Shown: in pieces, positions 5,931 to 64,000 of the stretch
Numbering within the stretch: position 1 is the first letter of the stretch
Layout of the letters: the number at the start of each line of letters is the position of its first letter
NCBI GenBank assembly: GCA_950097015.1
Contig: CATNEN010000039.1
Location: 20,274,001 to 20,338,000 of the forward strand
Direction: 5' to 3'
Length of the DNA stretch: 64,000 nucleotides
Origin: Macrostomum hystrix
Lineage: Eukaryota; Animalia; Platyhelminthes
Notes under the pieces: model-generated
Seen by the model: the letters and a program-made list of their open reading frames with translations, nothing else
Databases searched by the model: none
What the model was told of the DNA's origin: nothing
Made by a program: the position numbers and the translations under genes

Positions 5931-7309
5931 GTTTTGTTTCGAATCGCCTTGAAAAAAATGTTAATAGAATTTTTGCGAGATTTTTGCGATCAAATATTGA
6001 ACTTAGGGTTTTTATTGTTGTCATTAACGTAAATTGACATGTGAGACAATGAGGTGCGAACATAAAACATTAAAATGCCAAACCCTAATACAATTAGGGT
6101 AAAAGTGTGATTCTATTCTTTACATTACTCTACTCCGAATACGGGGTAGCCCACAAACAGCACTCACACTAAAAGTACTCTAAGAATCGGAGTAATATAC
6201 ATTACAGCTCACACACAGTCTAGGGATTATAGGAAGATATTGAAGACGTCATTAGATCAATGGAAGCTCTAGGAGTTGGTTCTGGTGAAGAGGCAGCAAT
6301 TTCCCTGATTGAATAGCAAAAACTGTCTGTCTGTCCGTCCGTCAGGTCCGCCGCATCCTATTCACTGATTCAGAGGCAAACATGCCCTTCTCTAATCAAA
6401 ATTTCTAATCCTATTCATTTCTCTGTCTGATCCCGCTGTAGAGAGACTCCGAACTGCAATGACCAAACGGGAATTACAGCGATTTTTTCATAAAAGAAAT
6501 CGAACAAAATAACGGGGTTCTCGTTTGCAAAGTTCGAGGAAAAAAGTTTAAATTAGAATTGTCTTCCAAGTCGGAAGCAATTCCGTAGGGACTTCGGCCA
6601 GACTAACTTTTTTCCGTTTGTCAAGCAAGATCCCAGAGGGAATTCCCCCCCCGTCAGAAAATTTGCATGAGAACGAAAAATAGCCGAGAACTATATAGCA
6701 GAGCGCATGCACAACAAGTAGTTCAGGAAGCTTCACTTGAACCTTAATTTATCCCTAGTTTGTGGGAAATGCAATTCGGAGAACTAAGAATAGACGGTAT
6801 CAGGGAGGTGGGCATTCGGTGCACCAGTTGCTGTTGGTTGGCCCCATCAAGGCAGTTTTACTCGCTTCTCAAGCCTCTTCATGAACAAATTGATTTATTT
6901 ATATTTCTCTGCTTTCGGATTTCACGTTTCTGCAGAGAAGCGAAAGAATAAGTGGAAATCTAGTTTCTATCGGTTTAACTATTCCCAGTTGGGAGTTCCA
7001 AAAATTGTGCTTGACTAGCTAAAGTACATTACGAGTTGATTGTTTACTAAGAGCTGACTGAGATTCACTTTCAGTTATGGTTAGCCCGCTTGATAAGTGG
7101 CTTGAGTAGTCTAACCTCAATTATTCAAATTAGCAGCTGACATATTGATTTAATCTATTTAATAAATGGAATTTCGAATAAAATAAATTTTCACTTCTTT
7201 TTTCCTTATTAATTTTCTCCCTTCTACTCTATTCTAGCACTGCCTTTCTCCTCTGTCCATTTATTCGATTTCTGTTTTATCTTTAATCTCCGCTAACTGA
7301 CCTCAATTG

Positions 7310-10300
7310 TTTCTCCCTATCTCCCTATCTCTTTCTCGTATTTCCTCTCTCCTCTCTGCTTTCTGCTCTCCTCTCATTTCTGTCCTCTTCTCTCCCCTAT
7401 CTTCTGTCCTCTCCTCTCATTTCTGTCCTCTTCTCTCCCCTATCTTCTGTCCTCTCCTCTCATTTCTGTCCTCTTCTCTCCCCTGTCTTCTGTCCTCTCC
7501 TCTCCCCTATCTTCTGTCCTCTCCTCTCATTTCTGTCCTCTTCTCTCCCCTATCTTCTGTCCTCTCCTCTCCCCTATCTTCTGTCCTCTCCTCTCCCCTA
7601 TCTTCTGTCCTCTCCTCTCATTTCTGTCCTCTTCTCTCCCCTATCTTCTGTCCTCTCCTCTCCCCTATCTTCTGTCCTCTCCTCTCCCCTATCTTCTGTC
7701 CTCTCCTCTCCCCTATCTTCTGTCCTCTTCTCTCCCCTATCTTCTGTCCTCTCCTCTCATTTCTGTCCTCTTCTCTCCCCTATCTTCTGTCCTCTCCTCT
7801 CGTTTCTGTCCTCTCCTCTCCCCTATCTTCTGTCCTCTCCTCTCCCCTATCTTCTGTCCTCTCCTCTCCCCTATCTTCTGTCCTCTCCTCTCCCCTATCT
7901 TCTGTCCTCTCCTCTCCCCTGTCCTCTGTTCTCTCCCCTATCTTCTGTCCTCTTCTCTCCCCTATCTTCTGTCCTCTCCTCTCATTTCTGTCCTCTTCTC
8001 TCCCCTATCTTCTGTCCTCTCCTCTCATTTCTGTCCTCTTCTCTCCCCTATCTTCTGTCCTCTCCTCTCACCTATCTTCTGTCCTCTCCTCTCATTTCTG
8101 TCCTCTTCTCTCCCCTATCTTCTGTCCTCTCCTCTCCCCTATCTTCTGTCCTCTCCTCTCCCCTATCTTCTGTCCTCTCCTCTCCCCTATCTTCTGTCCT
8201 CTTCTCTCCCCTATCTTCTGTCCTCTCCTCTCATTTCTGTCCTCTTCTCTCCCCTATCTTCTGTCCTCTCCTCTCGTTTCTGTCCTCTTCTCTCCCCTAT
8301 CTTCTGTCCTCTCCTCTCCCCTATCTTCTGTCCTCTCCTCTCTCCTATCTTCTGTCCTCTTCTCTCCCCTATCTTCTGTCCTCTCCTCTCCCCTATCTTC
8401 TGTCCTCTCCTCTCCCCTATCTTCTGTCCTCTCCTCTCCCCTGTCCTCTGTTCTCTCCCCTATCTTCTGTCCTCTTCTCTCCCCTATCTTCTGTCCTCTC
8501 CTCTCATTTCTGTCCTCTTCTCTCCCCTATCTTCTGTCCTCTCCTCTCATTTCTGTCCTCTTCTCTCCCCTATCTTCTGTCCTCTCCTCTCCCCTATCTT
8601 CTGTCCTCTCCTCTCATTTCTGTCCTCTTCTCTCCCCTATCTTCTGTCCTCTCCTCTCCCCTATCTTCTGTCCTCTCCTCTCCCCTATCTTCTGTCCTCT
8701 CCTCTCCCCTATCTTCTGTCCTCTTCTCTCCCCTATCTTCTGTCCTCTCCTCTCCCCTATCTTCTGTCCTCTCCTCTCCCCTATCTTCTGTCCTCTCCTC
8801 TCCCCTGTCCTCTGTTCTCTCCCCTATCTTCTGTCCTCTTCTCTCCCCTATCTTCTGTCCTCTCCTCTCATTTCTGTCCTCTTCTCTCCCCTATCTTCTG
8901 TCCTCTCCTCTCATTTCTGTCCTCTTCTCTCCCCTATCTTCTGTCCTCTTCTCTCCCCTATCTTCTGTCCTCTCCTCTCCCCTATCTTCTGTCCTCTCCT
9001 CTCCCCTGTCCTCTGTTCTCTCCCCTATCTTCTGTCCTCTCCTCTCCCCTATCTTCTGTCCTCTCCTCTCCCCTATCTTCTGTCCTCTCCTCTCCCCTAT
9101 CTTCTGTCCTCTTCTCTCCCCTATCTTCTGTCCTCTCCTCTCCCCTATCTTCTGTCCTCTCCTCTCTCCTATCTTCTGTCCTCTTCTCTCCCCTATCTTC
9201 TGTCCTCTCCTCTCCCCTATCTTCTGTCCTCTCCTCTCCCCTATCTTCTGTCCTCTCCTCTCTCCTATCTTCTGTCCTCTTCTCTCCCCTATCTTCTGTC
9301 CTCTCCTCTCCCCTATCTTCTGTCCTCTCCTCTCCCCTATCTTCTGTCCTCTCCTCTCCCCTGTCCTCTGTTCTCTCCCCTATCTTCTGTCCTCTCCTCT
9401 CATTTCTGTCCTCTTCTCTCCCCTATCTTCTGTCCTCTCCTCTCCCCTATCTTCTGTCCTCTCCTCTCCCCTATCTTCTGTCCTCTCCTCTCTCCTATCT
9501 TCTGTCCTCTTCTCTCCCCTATCTTCTGTCCTCTCCTCTCCCCTATCTTCTGTCCTCTCCTCTCCCCTATCTTCTGTCCTCTCCTCTCCCCTGTCCTCTG
9601 TTCTCTCCCCTATCTTCTGTCCTCTTCTCTCCCCTATCTTCTGTCCTCTCCTCTCATTTCTGTCCTCTTCTCTCCCCTATCTTCTGTCCTCTCCTCTCAT
9701 TTCTGTCCTCTTCTCTCCCCTATCTTCTGTCCTCTCCTCTCCCCTATCTTCTGTCCTCTCCTCTCATTTCTGTCCTCTTCTCTCCCCTATCTTCTGTCCT
9801 CTCCTCTCCCCTATCTTCTGTCCTCTTCTCTCCCCTATCTTCTGTCCTCTCCTCTCCCCTATCTTCTGTCCTTTTCTCTCCCCTATCTTCTGTCCTCTCC
9901 TCTCATTTCTGTCCTCTTCTCTCCCCTATCTTCTGTCCTCTCCTCTCGTTTCTGTCCTCTTCTCTCCCCTATCTTCTGTCCTCTCCTCTCCCCTATCTTC
10001 TGTCCTCTCCTCTCTCCTATCTTCTGTCCTCTTCTCTCCCCTATCTTCTGTCCTCTCCTCTCCCCTATCTTCTGTCCTCTCCTCTCCCCTATCTTCTGTC
10101 CTCTCCTCTCCCCTGTCCTCTGTTCTCTCCCCTATCTTCTGTCCTCTCCTCTCATTTCTGTCCTCTTCTCTCATTTCTGTCCTCTTCTCTCCCCTATCTT
10201 CTGTCCTCTTCTCTCCCCTATCTTCCGTCCTCTCCTCTCCCCTATCTTCTGTCCTCTCCTCTCCCCTGTCCTCTGTTCTCTCCCCTATCTTCTGTCCTCT

Positions 10301-59844: not shown

Positions 59845-61059
59845 CTATGAAATGAAACGCAATGTTTTTTTCAGTGCCAATTAAGAAAGAAGAATGATAT
59901 TTCGAACCCAGACATCACTGGAGAAATGTCATTTAAAGTCCGAAACCAAAGCAAAGGCTTCCTTGCCTTGTTTAAATCGAAGCACTTCAATATGCTTTCT
60001 CTTATTTCTCCTATTGCTTCGCAATAAAAAATAAAAATCAATCATCGAACCGTTGAGTGTATAGAGATGCAGCAAAACTCTGTAGGGTGTAGCCATGCGC
60101 TTTTAGCCGTGGGAAATTCAAAACGAACACACCTACAAGAAATATGGCTGCACACGGCTCTGAGATGGTATACCGATAGAAAATTCGGGTACTTTAAAGC
60201 TATAGGAATTTAGCTTTGAGAGAGTTTAGAGACCTCGATATTGACCCTCGCTTAAAGTGCTTCCTGGCTTTAAGCGTTTAGTTCAATCTCTTCATGCATG
60301 TGCTACATGCACGAGCTATATAATAATTTAGTAGTGAATGCTATACAAAAGTACTTTCTGTAGCAGTGACACGCGCCATTTAAAAGGATGCTGACACAAG
60401 TAATGCTCAGATTTTTTACTATTATCGACTTCTTCTCCTGTAGGGTTTCGTGCTGAAAACACTCTATGGGGCCAGAAAATCAAAACCAATCAGCTATCTG
60501 ATTTTTGCTGAACGAATGTTTCAGAAAGCTTTTGTAAGAATGAGAAATAATTTACTCGTACCAAAGCCACTGATTCTTTATGAGTGCAATGTAAATAAAA
60601 GCTCAAACCAGAATTCCCCCCATCATGCAATGTACTATATCACTGCGCCTCTGTTGTCAAGGCTCATTGGCGAAAATAATGCAACAAGCCCCAAGCCTTC
60701 TCTGTGGGGAAAAGGATTTTTATTCACTGTACAATCGTCTGCAAAACCACCCATTTCGTGTAGCATTTAAGAATTTTCTATTCCTATCTGATTGGCTGAG
60801 ACGCAACACATTATAGATCATTTAAGCACGGTGGTGCGTTGTGATTGGCTAGTTAGGCGTAAGCTCCCCTGTTCAAGCCTACCTTCTCCCCGACTGTTTC
60901 TACAAATTTTGTGCAGCTAACGCTCAAATAAATCAAGCTTTCTCCTCCTTGTTGACATACTTCTCGAACAAGTTTGAATGATCTGCGCGCACGGCTACAC
61001 ATGGCAATCAATATTCTGTAAAGTGACTGTGGTCGGGTTGGAATCCCCGGCCTACAGTA

Positions 61060-62488
61060 CTATACCTTTTCAACTTCGGATTCGTCAAAAGTGAGTTCGA
61101 ATTCGTCAGCCTATATAAAACTATAGAGCGCTCAAGGGAATGAGAAGGGGTGTCTAATTTCTTTCGAGAAATGGTCATTTCTTTCGAGAAAGTGACTTCG
61201 AATTCGTCAAAGTACGAGTAAGTGAAATTCGTCAGTGCAAAAGCAGCCTGATCAGAAAGTGTCTTCGCTTCGTCTATGGCAAGAAAGCAAAGTGCCCAGT
61301 GTAAATTTAAGCGAGAAAGTGAGTGAAATTCGTCAATGTAAAATAAGTCAGAAATCTTTCATTACTCATTTCCTGCTCTTATTGTTGTCAGAGATGCCAT
61401 ATATGAGAATTTCGTCTGTGGATCGCTCTAGACTCGTGCGATGTTTTCAACAGGGACGAGACTGGAGACTTATCGCAGTTGAACTGGACATTAAGAGGAC
61501 GACTGCCAATGACATTATCAGAAGATATGTAGATGAAGATAGGATTGATCTTAACGCGCGTGGAGGTGTGGTGAGACCAAAGTTCACCGAGGAGATGCTC
61601 GAGGCATTGACGAGGTACGTGGAAGAGAAGCCGACTGTAACGCTAAAAGAAATGCAGCAAAAGCTTGTGGCAGACTTTCCTGCTGCTCCTGTCGTGACAA
61701 CGCAGGCAATTAGTCGTCGGCTTGACGGGACTTTGTGCATTACATTGAAAGATGTACGGCGGGTTCACGGAGATTGGAATAGTGACGTGACAAAAGAAGT
61801 TAGATTTCTACACATGACCTGGATGCTAGAAACTGGACTGTTTGTAAGGAATTTAATCTACGTAGATGAGTGTGGGTGCAACCTATGGACGGCACGAACT
61901 AAAGGATGGGCGGATTTTGGCAATTTCAGTTTCTTCCACCTTACTCGCCTTTCTTGAACGCCACTGAAATGGCAATTTCTTGCATGAAGGCGGCCCTGAA
62001 ACGGCGCATGACCGACCCTGAAGTTGTCTTTGAAGTGCATGATCGTCAGGCGGCTGTAGCAGCAGGTGAGACACTTCAGAACCGGCGTCTTCGCATTTTG
62101 AGTCGAGAAGTGGAAGCTGCGATGGTTGCGATCACGGAGGAGAAATGCCGACAATGGCACGAATTCACACTTCGGTACGGACCGCGGTGTCTGGCACACG
62201 GAGAAATTTTGGACTGACTACAGCGTGTTAACCTGTTCAAGCGACTTTAAAGCGTGATTTTATGCGTCTGTTTTCCTGTTTTGTTTGTTTAGTTGCTGTT
62301 TTACTTCACGATTGACAATATATACTGGTTGCACTGACGAATTTCACTTACTTTGACGAATTCGAAGTCACTTTCTCGAAAGAAATTACCATAGACACCC
62401 TTCTCATTCCCTTGAGCGCTCTATAGTTTTATATAGACTGACGAATTCGAAGTCACTTTTGACGAATCCGAAGTTGAAAAGGTACGAG
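61060..62488 (+). mobile_element. Tc1/IS630-family DNA transposon with long TIRs and an internally deleted transposase (61394-62217)
   Basis: TA duplication; ~160-180 bp TIRs with repeated GAATTCGTCA boxes. The HTH region and YVDECG are joined, across a frame change near 61905, to FLPPYSPFLNATE. Confidence 0.93.
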
Positions 62489-62647
62489 TATATTAAGCAT
62501 AATACGAATAATCACTATAATCACACAGTACTTCTAAGTAAGATACAGTACTCCGTACAGGCCTGGCACTCCGAAAGTAAAGACACGCATGCAGCGCTTA
62601 CCGGTCGGAACGCAGAATGACAGGATGACTTCGATTTCATTTATTTG

Positions 62648-62689
62648 TATACAATAAGTTGAGACTTTGCAGTAAGAGACCGTCTTTAC
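62648..62689 (-). other. Spliced-leader-like sequence (relic), not an SL RNA gene
   Basis: GTAAAGACGGTCTCTTACTGCAAAGTCTCAACTTATTGTATA matches 37/42 positions of the Macrostomum SL as I recall it (not checked against a database). The terminal ATG reads ATA, and no GT donor follows directly. Confidence 0.75.
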
Positions 62690-64000
62690 CCATGGGATCT
62701 TAAAGTTCGCCGGAGCGAGCGCAGTTGCCCTGGCACGGGCAGATATTGACAAACAAATGGGGCAGCAAGGGGGCAGACAGGGGAGGCCGTGCACAGACAG
62801 GGTCAAGCCACCAGCGCGCAGGGAGGGGTGGGGTTGTACGCGCTGGCCGGGTGGACGGGCAAAGCAACGCAGAGCTGATTGGCGGGAGGGGCAAAGCCAC
62901 GAAGGGCTGGGGTAAGGGTTGACAGACAATGCCCGCGTCCAGCCAATCAGATGGCGGCACAGGGCACCCTGAGCAGGGCCGGGGGAGGAGGGAGAGAAAG
63001 GGCGAGGCCAAGACCGGGCCAAACAAACCGGCATCAAAAACACAACGGCCTTGGCGAGCAGTCGACCTGAGAAACACAGGCACTACAATTCATTAAGCAT
63101 CGGTTAAGTAGGTAGCAGCAAATGACCCTCATGGCTTGCAGAGCATTCATTCTATTCTAGTTCATTTGCTAATTATTAAGAAGGAGCTGAATCCTTCCAC
63201 TACGCATGCTAACTAGCGCAAGTACCCAATTACATCATTACTGCTAATTACCTGAGGTTCTGTTGAGTAAATCAAAAGAACTTGCCCCAAATCAAAGAAG
63301 TGCCTTTCCAAATACCAAGGAGAAGAACGATCGGGAGGAAAATATGATTATGTGTCTCGCGACTCTTGCCTACAGAACCATATGCTTCATTTCATCCTTA
63401 AAAACGAAGTCATGCAAAATTTCTGCTTAATTAAGTCTGCGCTATTCGTCAACTTTTTTATGACGAGCTAAACCAGTTTTCAACTCAAGCATTTAGTTAT
63501 GATGATGACGGAACACGCGATGCAGATTATTTCTACGTTAGTCCAGCTCCGAATATTTGAGTTAGCAATGATTCGTCTTGTCAAAATATTAACAAGAATT
63601 ACGAGCTACATTTACTAAAAAAGAACGACAATAACGACAAAGAACGACCAGGTCGAGCATTTATGTCAGTCTAAACATGTTCAGAGAACGCAGTCAAAAT
63701 AAGCCTCGTGACAGAGAGAATCACTGGGCATTGAAGCGATGAAATTATTAGATGGTTTCTATGTAGCTCTCTTAAGAACGCGAAGCGCTTATATCCATGA
63801 CAATACATGTGTACGCAAAGCTTTTAAAGCACTCTGAGTTGACATGCAATAGTAATGATCATTAGCCTGTTACAAATGCACTTAAGAGCTGAACATGATT
63901 GACTGACACAGCATTTTAGACATTTGCCATACAGACGCCATTATCAGACGGTGTGTATTGTATTTCATGAACAAAAATATGAGTTTTTAAGTGAGCCAAA

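Follow-up and report, generated by a model that had tools for sequence, protein, structure and literature searches.

The analysed window, a 64,000-nucleotide stretch of Macrostomum hystrix DNA, carries at 61017-63087 on the minus strand a 651-bp solo long terminal repeat (LTR) interrupted by a decayed Tc1-like transposon. On this strand the LTR begins with TG at 63087 and finishes with CA at 61017, and it contains a copy of the host spliced leader (SL). Neither a partner LTR nor internal element sequence is present in the 64-kb window, and the two copies of an ATTC duplication directly flank the single LTR. The initial annotation had noted the TG..CA ends and the duplication, which can be read directly, and its coordinates and minus-strand reading of a CCAAT-containing region, TTTAAG, a 42-nt SL-like sequence (62689-62648), AATAAA and GTAAG all hold. 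The locus is organized as follows:

63088..63091: target-site duplication, copy 1 (ATTC on the plus strand, GAAT on the minus strand), read directly
62483..63087, minus strand: 5' part of the solo LTR, made up of U3 (including the CCAAT boxes), the SL copy and an R/U5 block that reaches the insertion site of the Tc1-like element
62878..62947, minus strand: conserved stretch of U3 that contains both an inverted CCAAT (62947-62943) and a CCAAT (62882-62878)
62704-62699, minus strand: TTTAAG, putative TATA-like box, 10-16 nt upstream of SL nt 1
62648..62692, minus strand: 45-nt copy of the spliced-leader exon of the host (SL nt 1 at 62692, nt 45 at 62648)
62645-62640, minus strand: AATAAA, putative poly(A) signal, 2 nt after the SL copy
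62601-62597, minus strand: GTAAG, inside the conserved U5 block CCTGCGTTCCGACCGGTAAGCG
61063..62484, plus strand: decayed DNA transposon of Tc1/mariner-like type, nested in the LTR, flanked by TA and bearing inverted ends of ~178 bp
61017..61062, minus strand: 3' end of the solo LTR (last 46 nt, ending ...CACTTTACA), aligning to the LTR end ...CACTGTCACTACA of the full-length copy L063
61013..61016: target-site duplication, copy 2 (ATTC on the plus strand, GAAT on the minus strand), read directly

The inverted repeats of the nested transposon (61063-61240 and 62484-62329) are 86% identical, and remnants of its broken ORF are found at 61235-61957 (HTH_32, HTH_23 and PAX) and 61906-62217 (DDE_3), with all domain matches below curated cut-offs. 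The LTR copy in the window is dead and decaying. LTR-LTR recombination would have left the solo LTR, into which the Tc1-like transposon would have inserted afterwards.

The window LTR belongs to a group of Ty3/gypsy elements. Genome searches used the piece 62492-63087; the 5' part of the LTR (62483..63087) matches at least 52 genomic sites with 72-93% identity and is ~76% identical over its length to the LTRs of full-length Ty3/gypsy copies such as L063. When its two halves are joined with the Tc1-like insert left out, as was done for alignment to the L063 LTR, the window LTR can be aligned over its entire extent to the LTRs of full-length copies and has the SL at the same place. The block at 62878..62947 is the best-conserved U3 stretch in the comparison with L063. 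Most Gypsy-group subfamilies keep the TATA-like box as (A)CTTTAAGAT or CTTTAAAAGAT, and nearly all keep the U5 block CCTGCGTTCCGACCGGTAAGCG. AATAAA occurs in the subfamily of the window, others having AAATACA, or ATTAAA farther downstream, in its stead.

The full-length copies L061, L062 and L063 have paired LTRs that are 99-100% identical and 7.2-8.4 kb apart, together with the PBS TGGCGCCCGAACGGGGAC, which may be tRNA-Lys-like, as is the HIV-1 PBS, and the PPT AGGAGGGGAGGA. A tRNA gene as candidate primer was found neither in the window nor in 28 loci. The relatives encode a gag with CCHC and a pol arranged as PR-RT-RNaseH-IN, the Pfam order in L063 and L062 being zf-CCHC, Asp_protease_2, RVT_1, RT_RNaseH, Integrase_H2C2 and rve. 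Target-site duplications in the group include TTGT, GAAT and TTAG; 4-bp duplications flank all three full-length copies as well as the solo LTRs L002, L003, L004 and L016, with a 3/4 match at L020, and TG..CA ends recur in L061, L062 and all five of these solo LTRs. The proposed identity as an LTR retrotransposon is thus borne out by paralogs with paired LTRs, PBS, PPT and gag-pol. Neither the LTR nor the SL RNA has an Rfam family, and a metagenome scan with the gag alignment found no relative. Gag relatives P0001-P0008 were matched in other samples.

The host SL exon was taken from genuine SL RNA genes of the M. hystrix genome and is identical to the published 35-nt SL of M. lignano (PMC8629364). 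From it the window copy differs at 8 of 45 positions, or at 5 of 42 without the three 5' bases, the latter being the figure given in the initial annotation; the final ATG of the SL reads ATA in the window. As the features are short, chance resemblance, or a coincidence of the TG..CA ends and ATTC flanks, was considered, and its likelihood is negligible: a 31-nt SL core pattern with up to 2 mismatches gave 94 matches in the genome against 0 for the reversed control, the window copy being matched at C39:20336652-20336682, and full-length relatives and 4-bp duplications occur throughout the family. An SL copy lies at the same LTR position in all 16 family copies examined and at the same place in both LTRs, making it a family feature rather than a one-off insertion. 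All LTRs read contain a single full-length SL copy with no tandem truncated relics, and no second, degenerate SL was found by eye upstream of it.

The resemblance to the SL is limited to the exon. Across 69 distinct dispersed non-gene copies, likeness to the SL RNA gene begins at SL nt 1-2 and ends at the splice donor: the match is ~0.2 at position -1, 0.5-0.8 at +1 to +4, at least 0.9 in the core and 0.42 at +45, falling to 0.19 and 0.12 at the intron GT. The LTR copies are followed by no intron, Sm site or stem-loops. The window reads ...TTATTGTATA/CAAATAAA across the junction (marked by the slash), whereas genuine SL RNA genes read ...GCATG/GTAAGACACCG and continue with two hairpins and ATATTTTTAG. 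The window copy was therefore rejected as an SL RNA gene, there being no GT donor directly after the exon, no stem-loops and no Sm site. SL RNA genes are multicopy, with at least 17 in rDNA units, and one dispersed SL copy (L031) does have the intron, which would suit a DNA-level insertion of such a gene, or of a pseudogene, into the LTR, or else the integration of a retrocopied unspliced SL RNA; such an origin is nevertheless very improbable given that likeness in the LTRs stops at the splice donor without intron, Sm site or hairpins beyond. The exon-exact limits of likeness point instead to a spliced RNA as the source, and fit the origin from a trans-spliced, reverse-transcribed RNA that the initial annotation had proposed.

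We hypothesize, with a probability of roughly 0.8, that the locus is a solo Ty3/gypsy LTR, later hit by a Tc1-like transposon, whose SL is a relic inherited from an ancestor of the whole family via a reverse-transcribed trans-spliced RNA. An element RNA would have acquired the SL by trans-splicing and been reverse-transcribed as far as its 5' terminus. Transfer of the resulting strong-stop DNA onto an RNA 3' end could then have produced a new LTR of the form U3-SL-downstream sequence, and the SL copy would have passed to both LTRs in every later cycle, as expected from its position upstream of the poly(A) site. Since a 45-nt non-homologous 3' tail on the strong-stop DNA would be hard to extend, capture would require a rare, so far hypothetical microhomology-guided transfer. 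We considered whether copy-choice with genuine SL had later "refreshed" the LTR copy, and reject this: the 5' end, expected to be the most refreshed, is the least host-like part, and the intact GCATG/CATAAG junction of L033, which looks ancestral, also disfavours it.

The SL copy probably represents the start of the transcribed leader (R). Different changes have destroyed the SL ATG in 10 of 14 Gypsy-group lineages, more often than any other 3-nt window was altered, and this repeated loss suggests that the copy lies in a transcribed leader. The TATA box of a 354-bp LTR family that also carries the SL is located at -33 to -26 of SL nt 1, a spacing that agrees with a start at the SL copy; the nearest TATA-like box in an SL-bearing BEL/Pao family, ~67 nt upstream, is not so spaced. 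The TTTAAG of the Gypsy group, 10-16 nt upstream, is too close for a TATA-directed start at SL nt 1, so the U3/R boundary of this group may be inside the SL copy. SL nt 1-8 are the least conserved part of the copy in the Gypsy group, and, with the spacing of the box, this suggests that the TSS may fall within it. RNA evidence consisted of Logan contigs, which are without starts, ends or strand. They include LTR-encoded SL copies joined to element sequence, and one contig spans U3, SL copy and leader, which could be read-through rather than LTR-initiated RNA; no spliced joint from the LTR GTAAG was seen in these contigs.

Compatible with a relic origin, the SL copy might in addition be maintained by selection because it has a function in the element, a reading we regard as possible though doubtful. 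It might act as a host-like 5' leader or R that promotes initiation, translation or stability in stem cells or germ cells, or might shield the RNA from silencing. Between 12 diverged Gypsy-group sub-clusters the SL block is 80% identical, compared with 61% and 59% for its 60-nt flanks and a shuffled baseline of 53%, although indels are frequent in the LTR flanks and depress their measured identity. Core nt 9-42 changed in 0-2 lineages per position, save two positions with six lineages each, but the lineages are related and such counts are not independent. The repeated ATG loss also speaks for maintenance, as it implies that the block is read as 5' UTR. On the other hand, in the 354-bp family the SL block evolved faster than the remaining LTR: its core has 3 fixed changes, 4 nt have been lost and the 5' part is changed in at least 50 copies, compared with ~4% divergence elsewhere. 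LTR-driven RNA is moreover expected to carry an m7G rather than a TMG cap, which counts against a maintained SL function.

SL copies are not confined to Ty3/gypsy elements. They are also carried by the LTRs of BEL/Pao elements, with PF05380 matches inside their LTR pairs, by the 354-bp LTR family, for which at least 314 candidate matches were obtained, and by a small non-autonomous family, the interiors of the BEL/Pao and 354-bp families being judged from match positions only. Hundreds of candidate LTR matches thus agree with the earlier suggestion that the elements scatter SL copies through the genome. Among the SL-bearing families at least 2 different SL/downstream junctions can be distinguished. 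A candidate element acceptor site reads AG/AAAGAAATC. In metagenomes, no LTR was retrieved with the SL pattern, which matched 2 trans-spliced mRNA contigs and 1 SL RNA gene of a different Macrostomum-like worm.

Rather than being newly captured each time, the SL may have passed between families within the genome by transfer of strong-stop DNA onto the RNA of another element, yielding chimeric LTRs. Such a transfer would be possible due to the SL block (as R) and the PBS TGGCGC(C/A)CGAAC being common to the families, and this shared PBS is itself in its favor. The motif AAGAAATCA directly follows the SL in the 354-bp family, in the Gypsy-type branch L101/L103 and in the small element L064; it is, however, short, and the superfamily of L101 and L103 is assumed from their LTRs. 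An LTR pair of the 354-bp family, which shares AAGAAATCA, can flank a BEL/Pao protease match, and L053 consists of U3 and SL followed by unrelated sequence. Given that the SL is joined differently in the BEL/Pao family (SL/GCTTCAACTCG) and that co-packaging of unlike RNAs is unproven, spread between families appears quite unlikely. A broader proposal is that the SL block is a working shared R/leader module with its core kept in divergent Gypsy-group subfamilies and its ATG purged, and that strand transfer between unlike RNAs of Ty3/gypsy and BEL/Pao families, which have the block and the PBS type in common, could exchange LTR halves, hand the SL on to other families and yield U3-SL-host chimeras; we put this forward tentatively and consider it rather unlikely.

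Several known systems link retroelements or retro-copied transcripts to SL sequences. The non-LTR elements SLACS, CZAR and NeSL-1 use the SL RNA gene as their insertion site and are likewise physically linked to SL sequence, whereas the M. hystrix element carries an exon-only SL copy wherever it is inserted. That the RNA of an LTR retrotransposon can serve as a trans-splicing substrate is known from the Ty3/gypsy element Cer1 of C. elegans, whose 2.4-kb spliced mRNA occurs with and without SL1 (PMC3315495); there, however, SL1 is added to the RNA instead of being encoded by the LTR, and trans-splicing does not affect the full-length genomic RNA of 8 kb. In dinoflagellates, relic SLs of recycled cDNAs (Slamovits and Keeling 2008, as described in PMC3229502 and PMC7245778) are, according to these descriptions, similarly DNA-encoded at the 5' end of retro-copied transcripts and prove reverse transcription of trans-spliced RNA. 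As described there, the carriers are retrogenes of the host, in which the relics are arranged in tandem and cut short at an AG; in M. hystrix the carrier is a retroelement with a single full-length relic.

The closest likeness is found in parasitic flatworms, for which SL fragments in LTR and LINE elements were briefly remarked on (Calvelo et al. 2025, Mol Biol Evol, PMC12582326), so the possibility raised in the initial annotation that the feature is undescribed does not stand in full. Those cases are also partial leaders without other SL RNA features inside mobile elements, mentioned as a filtering step that discarded 597 loci, without anatomy. M. hystrix differs in being a free-living host and in having all 45 nt of the exon, always at one site close to the presumed U3/R junction and inherited by whole Ty3/gypsy and BEL/Pao families. 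The main text of the M. lignano LTR paper does not mention the SL.

These LTRs provide clean sequence-level proof that LTR-retrotransposon RNAs of a flatworm underwent trans-splicing and that RNAs of this kind are able to complete retrotransposition, with the SL inherited as a part of the LTR in two retrotransposon superfamilies. In Macrostomum genomes, the search for SL RNA genes, the mapping of SL reads and the calling of trans-splicing sites are all confounded by these hundreds of copies. If the SL block is maintained, it would represent a mobile element borrowing a host RNA-processing tag, which is testable via transgenesis in M. lignano.

The LTR could be read directly along the minus strand of the window, and every coordinate in the initial annotation, which had proposed an LTR carrying a copy of the host spliced leader (SL), proved correct. 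Its features are as follows.

63087, minus strand: TG start of the LTR
62947-62943 and 62882-62878, minus strand: inverted CCAAT and CCAAT within a GC-rich stretch
62704-62699, minus strand: TTTAAG
62692-62648, minus strand: SL-like block
62645-62640, minus strand: AATAAA
62601-62597, minus strand: GTAAG, part of a CCTGCGTTCCGACCGGTAAG block
61063-62484: interruption with inverted ends of about 178 bp and TA flanks
61017, minus strand: CA end, closing the final 46 nt of the LTR beyond the interruption
63088-63091 and 61013-61016: GAAT (ATTC on the plus strand) flanking the two LTR ends

The interruption contains broken ORFs with helix-turn-helix and DDE_3 remnants and is a decayed Tc1/mariner-like transposon. 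Because neither internal element sequence nor a partner LTR is present within the 64-kb window, the copy is a solo LTR.

A search of the assembly (42 contigs, 220,453,370 bases) with a 31-nt SL core yielded 94 matches with at most two mismatches and none for the reversed control. Seventeen perfect core copies lie in arrays of 11.6-kb period on contigs C15, C17 and C42, where downstream of the core come CATG|GTAAGACACCG, one hairpin, ATATTTTTAG and then another hairpin. The RNA of these array copies folds as a canonical SL RNA, with the classic arrangement of three hairpins and an Sm site. One SL RNA gene is found per 11.6-kb rDNA unit (18S-5.8S-28S), with a U1 snRNA gene some 300 nt away; in one C17 locus (L065, 12000-21999), the SL RNA gene occupies approximately 2371-2455 and U1 2748-2910, both on the minus strand. 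The SL exon consists of GCCGTAAAGA, the core and CATG, 45 nt in total, and its last 35 nt are the published Macrostomum lignano SL (PMC8629364). Measured against these genuine genes, the window copy shows the 5 differences over 42 positions originally claimed, and 8 over the whole 45-nt exon. Away from the rDNA arrays, a dispersed copy of the SL RNA (L031, C1:16047913) retains the intron portion but differs upstream of SL nt 7 and is probably a pseudogene.

Sorting the SL copies by flanking sequence revealed three LTR groups. Group 1 includes the window LTR, whose 596-bp piece at 62492-63087 has at least 52 genome matches of 72-93% identity. The SL search also returned same-strand pairs 7.2-8.4 kb apart, and the three loci fetched (L061, L062 and L063) are paired-LTR paralogs with 4-bp duplications (TTGT, GAAT and TTAG); their LTRs measure about 690 bp, and the two in a pair are 99-100% identical. 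In all three, a primer binding site (PBS), TGGCGCCCGAACGGGGAC, lies two bases past the 5' LTR and a polypurine tract, AGGAGGGGAGGA, precedes the 3' LTR. They encode a 302-aa gag, which has a CCHC knuckle, together with a pol of some 1,500 aa whose protease, RT, RNase H and integrase follow one another in the Ty3/gypsy order. With its two halves set side by side in a local script, the window LTR aligns with that of L063 from TGT(A/G)GTGCC to CACT(TT)ACA at about 76% identity, with the SL block at the matching position. Five solo LTRs of the window's subfamily are also flanked by 4-bp duplications, in one case with only 3 of the 4 positions matching; together with the full-length relatives, they show that the TG...CA ends and ATTC flanks are not coincidental. 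The SL block is a family feature and not a one-off insertion, being present in 16/16 subfamily copies read, some with later indels. Group 1 as a whole comprises at least 12 sub-clusters, with the SL 230-330 nt from the LTR 3' end.

Two further observations concern group 1 internal regions. L063 contains an insertion of about 1 kb (7033-8063; ORF 7208-8140), not found in L061 or L062, with a 311-aa ORF encoding a DnaJ J-domain; the insertion may represent a piece of a host gene acquired by the element and is noteworthy given the reported use of the heat-shock response by M. lignano LTR elements (PMC12801592). At the gag/pol overlap, within the pol frame, lie 12-23 tandem units of 30 bp, their number varying among element copies (L063:2244-3203; L061:2352-2874; L062:6591-7230).

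Group 2 LTRs are 370 bp long (TGTAGCGA...AAAGACA), carry the SL 52 nt from the LTR end and are associated with 5-bp duplications (CCACC, ACGCT), the PBS TGGCGCACGAACG and LTR pairs about 6.84 kb apart. BEL/Pao protease matches (PF05380) in 1,786-aa open frames lie within five such pairs, which identifies group 2 as BEL/Pao. Group 3 LTRs (354 bp, TGTCGCGA...CAAGACA) carry the SL just 17 nt from the LTR end, with the PBS TGGCGCCCGAACG and a 5-bp duplication, AGGGC, at the copy L033. Group 3, which has at least 314 candidate matches and many LTR pairs 1.7-1.9 kb apart, is a small non-autonomous element; one LTR pair with the group 3 SL variant flanks a BEL/Pao protease match. The sequence following the SL is GCTTCAACTCG in group 2, while (A/CAT)AAGAAATC is common to group 3, part of group 1 and the C1 locus L064. 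The SL is thus joined to its downstream sequence in at least two distinct ways, across two superfamilies.

Several SL carriers stand apart. At L064 (C1:19307500-19314000), an LTR-like repeat of about 500 bp containing an SL copy occurs four times, at spacings of 1834, 2321 and 1834 bp; this is a tandem LTR-internal-LTR array of another small element. In L053 (C39:11246832-11249862, minus strand 1199-1532), a 354-bp LTR copy with a perfect SL core, the family match ends about 2 nt before the SL 3' end and gives way to unrelated sequence, which could be a deletion or an SL-mediated chimera. In L085 (C15:174736-176166, minus strand), the PBS region is duplicated, TGGCGCCCAATGTGGGACA then TGGCGCCCGAACG, directly past a group 3 5' LTR. 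At L032, L069 and L050 (C3:7909520, C11:3964703 and C31:1410481), AGAGAC before the SL copy pairs perfectly with SL nt 14-19 (AGAGACCGTAAAGACGGTCTCT) in a hairpin, and L032 and L069 have a tRNA-like antisense stretch upstream; these loci may have arisen as snap-back cDNA artefacts or may belong to a further repeat family. Metagenome scans found no related element. Among JGI contigs recovered by an SL search of metagenomes (L106, L107 and L108), two metatranscriptome contigs start with the Macrostomum SL, on an isocitrate-dehydrogenase-like mRNA and a zinc-knuckle protein mRNA, and one metagenome contig carries the SL RNA gene of a related worm; Macrostomum-like flatworms are therefore present in these environmental samples.

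To trace the origin of the block, 69 distinct SL copies other than SL RNA genes were scored per position against the gene. The match is about 0.2 upstream, position -1 included. It takes values of 0.49, 0.81, 0.58 and 0.83 over +1 to +4, reaches about 0.9 or higher across the core, stands at 0.78-0.83 over +42 to +44 and at 0.42 for +45, and falls to 0.19 and 0.12 for the G and T of the intron. The copies were found independently of positions 1-10 and 42-45, so this boxcar shape is not a search artefact. They therefore run from the SL RNA 5' end to the splice junction, deriving from a spliced leader joined to other sequence and not from the gene. Insertion of an SL RNA gene as DNA is excluded, as the likeness ends at the splice junction. 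The exon-exact profile fits the proposed origin from a trans-spliced, reverse-transcribed element RNA, which is well supported; the interpretation in the initial annotation as a whole, with its putative U3/R placement and hypothesized mimic function, is partly supported. Under the proposed mechanism, a trans-spliced element RNA would be copied from the PBS to the cap, and the strong-stop DNA, with the complement of SL nt 1 at its end, would move to the 3' part of an RNA and be extended into U3, giving U3-SL-X-U5 LTRs. Once upstream of the poly(A) site, the SL block would be remade in both LTRs each cycle, whatever the start site. The putative transfer of strong-stop DNA with a non-homologous tail is the weak step.

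Three indirect lines of evidence place the block in the 5' leader. The SL's terminal ATG is altered in different ways in 10 of 14 group 1 lineages (ATA, AAA, TTA, TTG, CTG, TGT), more often than any other 3-nt SL window, and is removed by a 4-nt loss in group 3; such purging of an upstream start codon makes sense only in a 5' UTR. Group 3 has a TATA-type TATATTTT box at -33 to -26 relative to SL nt 1, a spacing typical of start sites. Finally, contigs from three sequencing runs that behave as RNA (genuine-SL depth of about 80,000-95,000 versus 4-8 on gag; about 50 Mb of contigs) include joins of U3 with LTR-type SL copies as well as of SL copies with downstream sequence specific to the element, although such contigs show neither transcript starts nor ends. 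The exact U3/R placement in the initial annotation is putative, however: in group 1 the TATA-like TTTAAG is just 10-16 nt upstream of the SL and SL nt 1-8 are the least conserved, and group 2 has no TATA-like box closer than about 67 nt upstream. The GGTAAG conserved in U5 is a possible cis-splice donor; no spliced joint from the U5 GTAAG was seen in the RNA contigs.

Evidence for maintenance of the block is mixed, pointing in both directions. Between group 1 sub-clusters, the SL block is 80% identical, compared with 61% and 59% for the 60-nt flanks and 53% for shuffled sequence. The main group 3 family (at least 50 copies) has three fixed core changes (CGGGCTC..GAGG..TTTGTTG), and the SL is pristine in the older copies L033 and L053, a pattern that resembles drift after an initial capture. 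Old solo copies, including the window's, decay.

Related phenomena have been described elsewhere. In C. elegans, the 2.4-kb spliced mRNA of Cer1 occurs with and without SL1 (PMC3315495), a leader that, unlike the LTR-encoded SL of M. hystrix, is not encoded in the element. In dinoflagellates, relic SLs are described as marking recycled host cDNAs (PMC3229502, PMC7245778). A detailed paper on M. lignano LTR retrotransposons does not mention the SL. In parasitic flatworms, 597 candidate SL loci were discarded as lying within LTR and LINE elements (Calvelo et al. 2025, PMC12582326); these are of the same kind as the M. hystrix LTR copies but were mentioned in passing, without anatomy, and our literature search for LTR-encoded SLs found no further description beyond that remark. 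The LTR copy may act as a functional SL mimic, as hypothesized in the initial annotation. The SL-bearing LTRs of M. hystrix are a well-resolved case of a phenomenon that had already been briefly noted.
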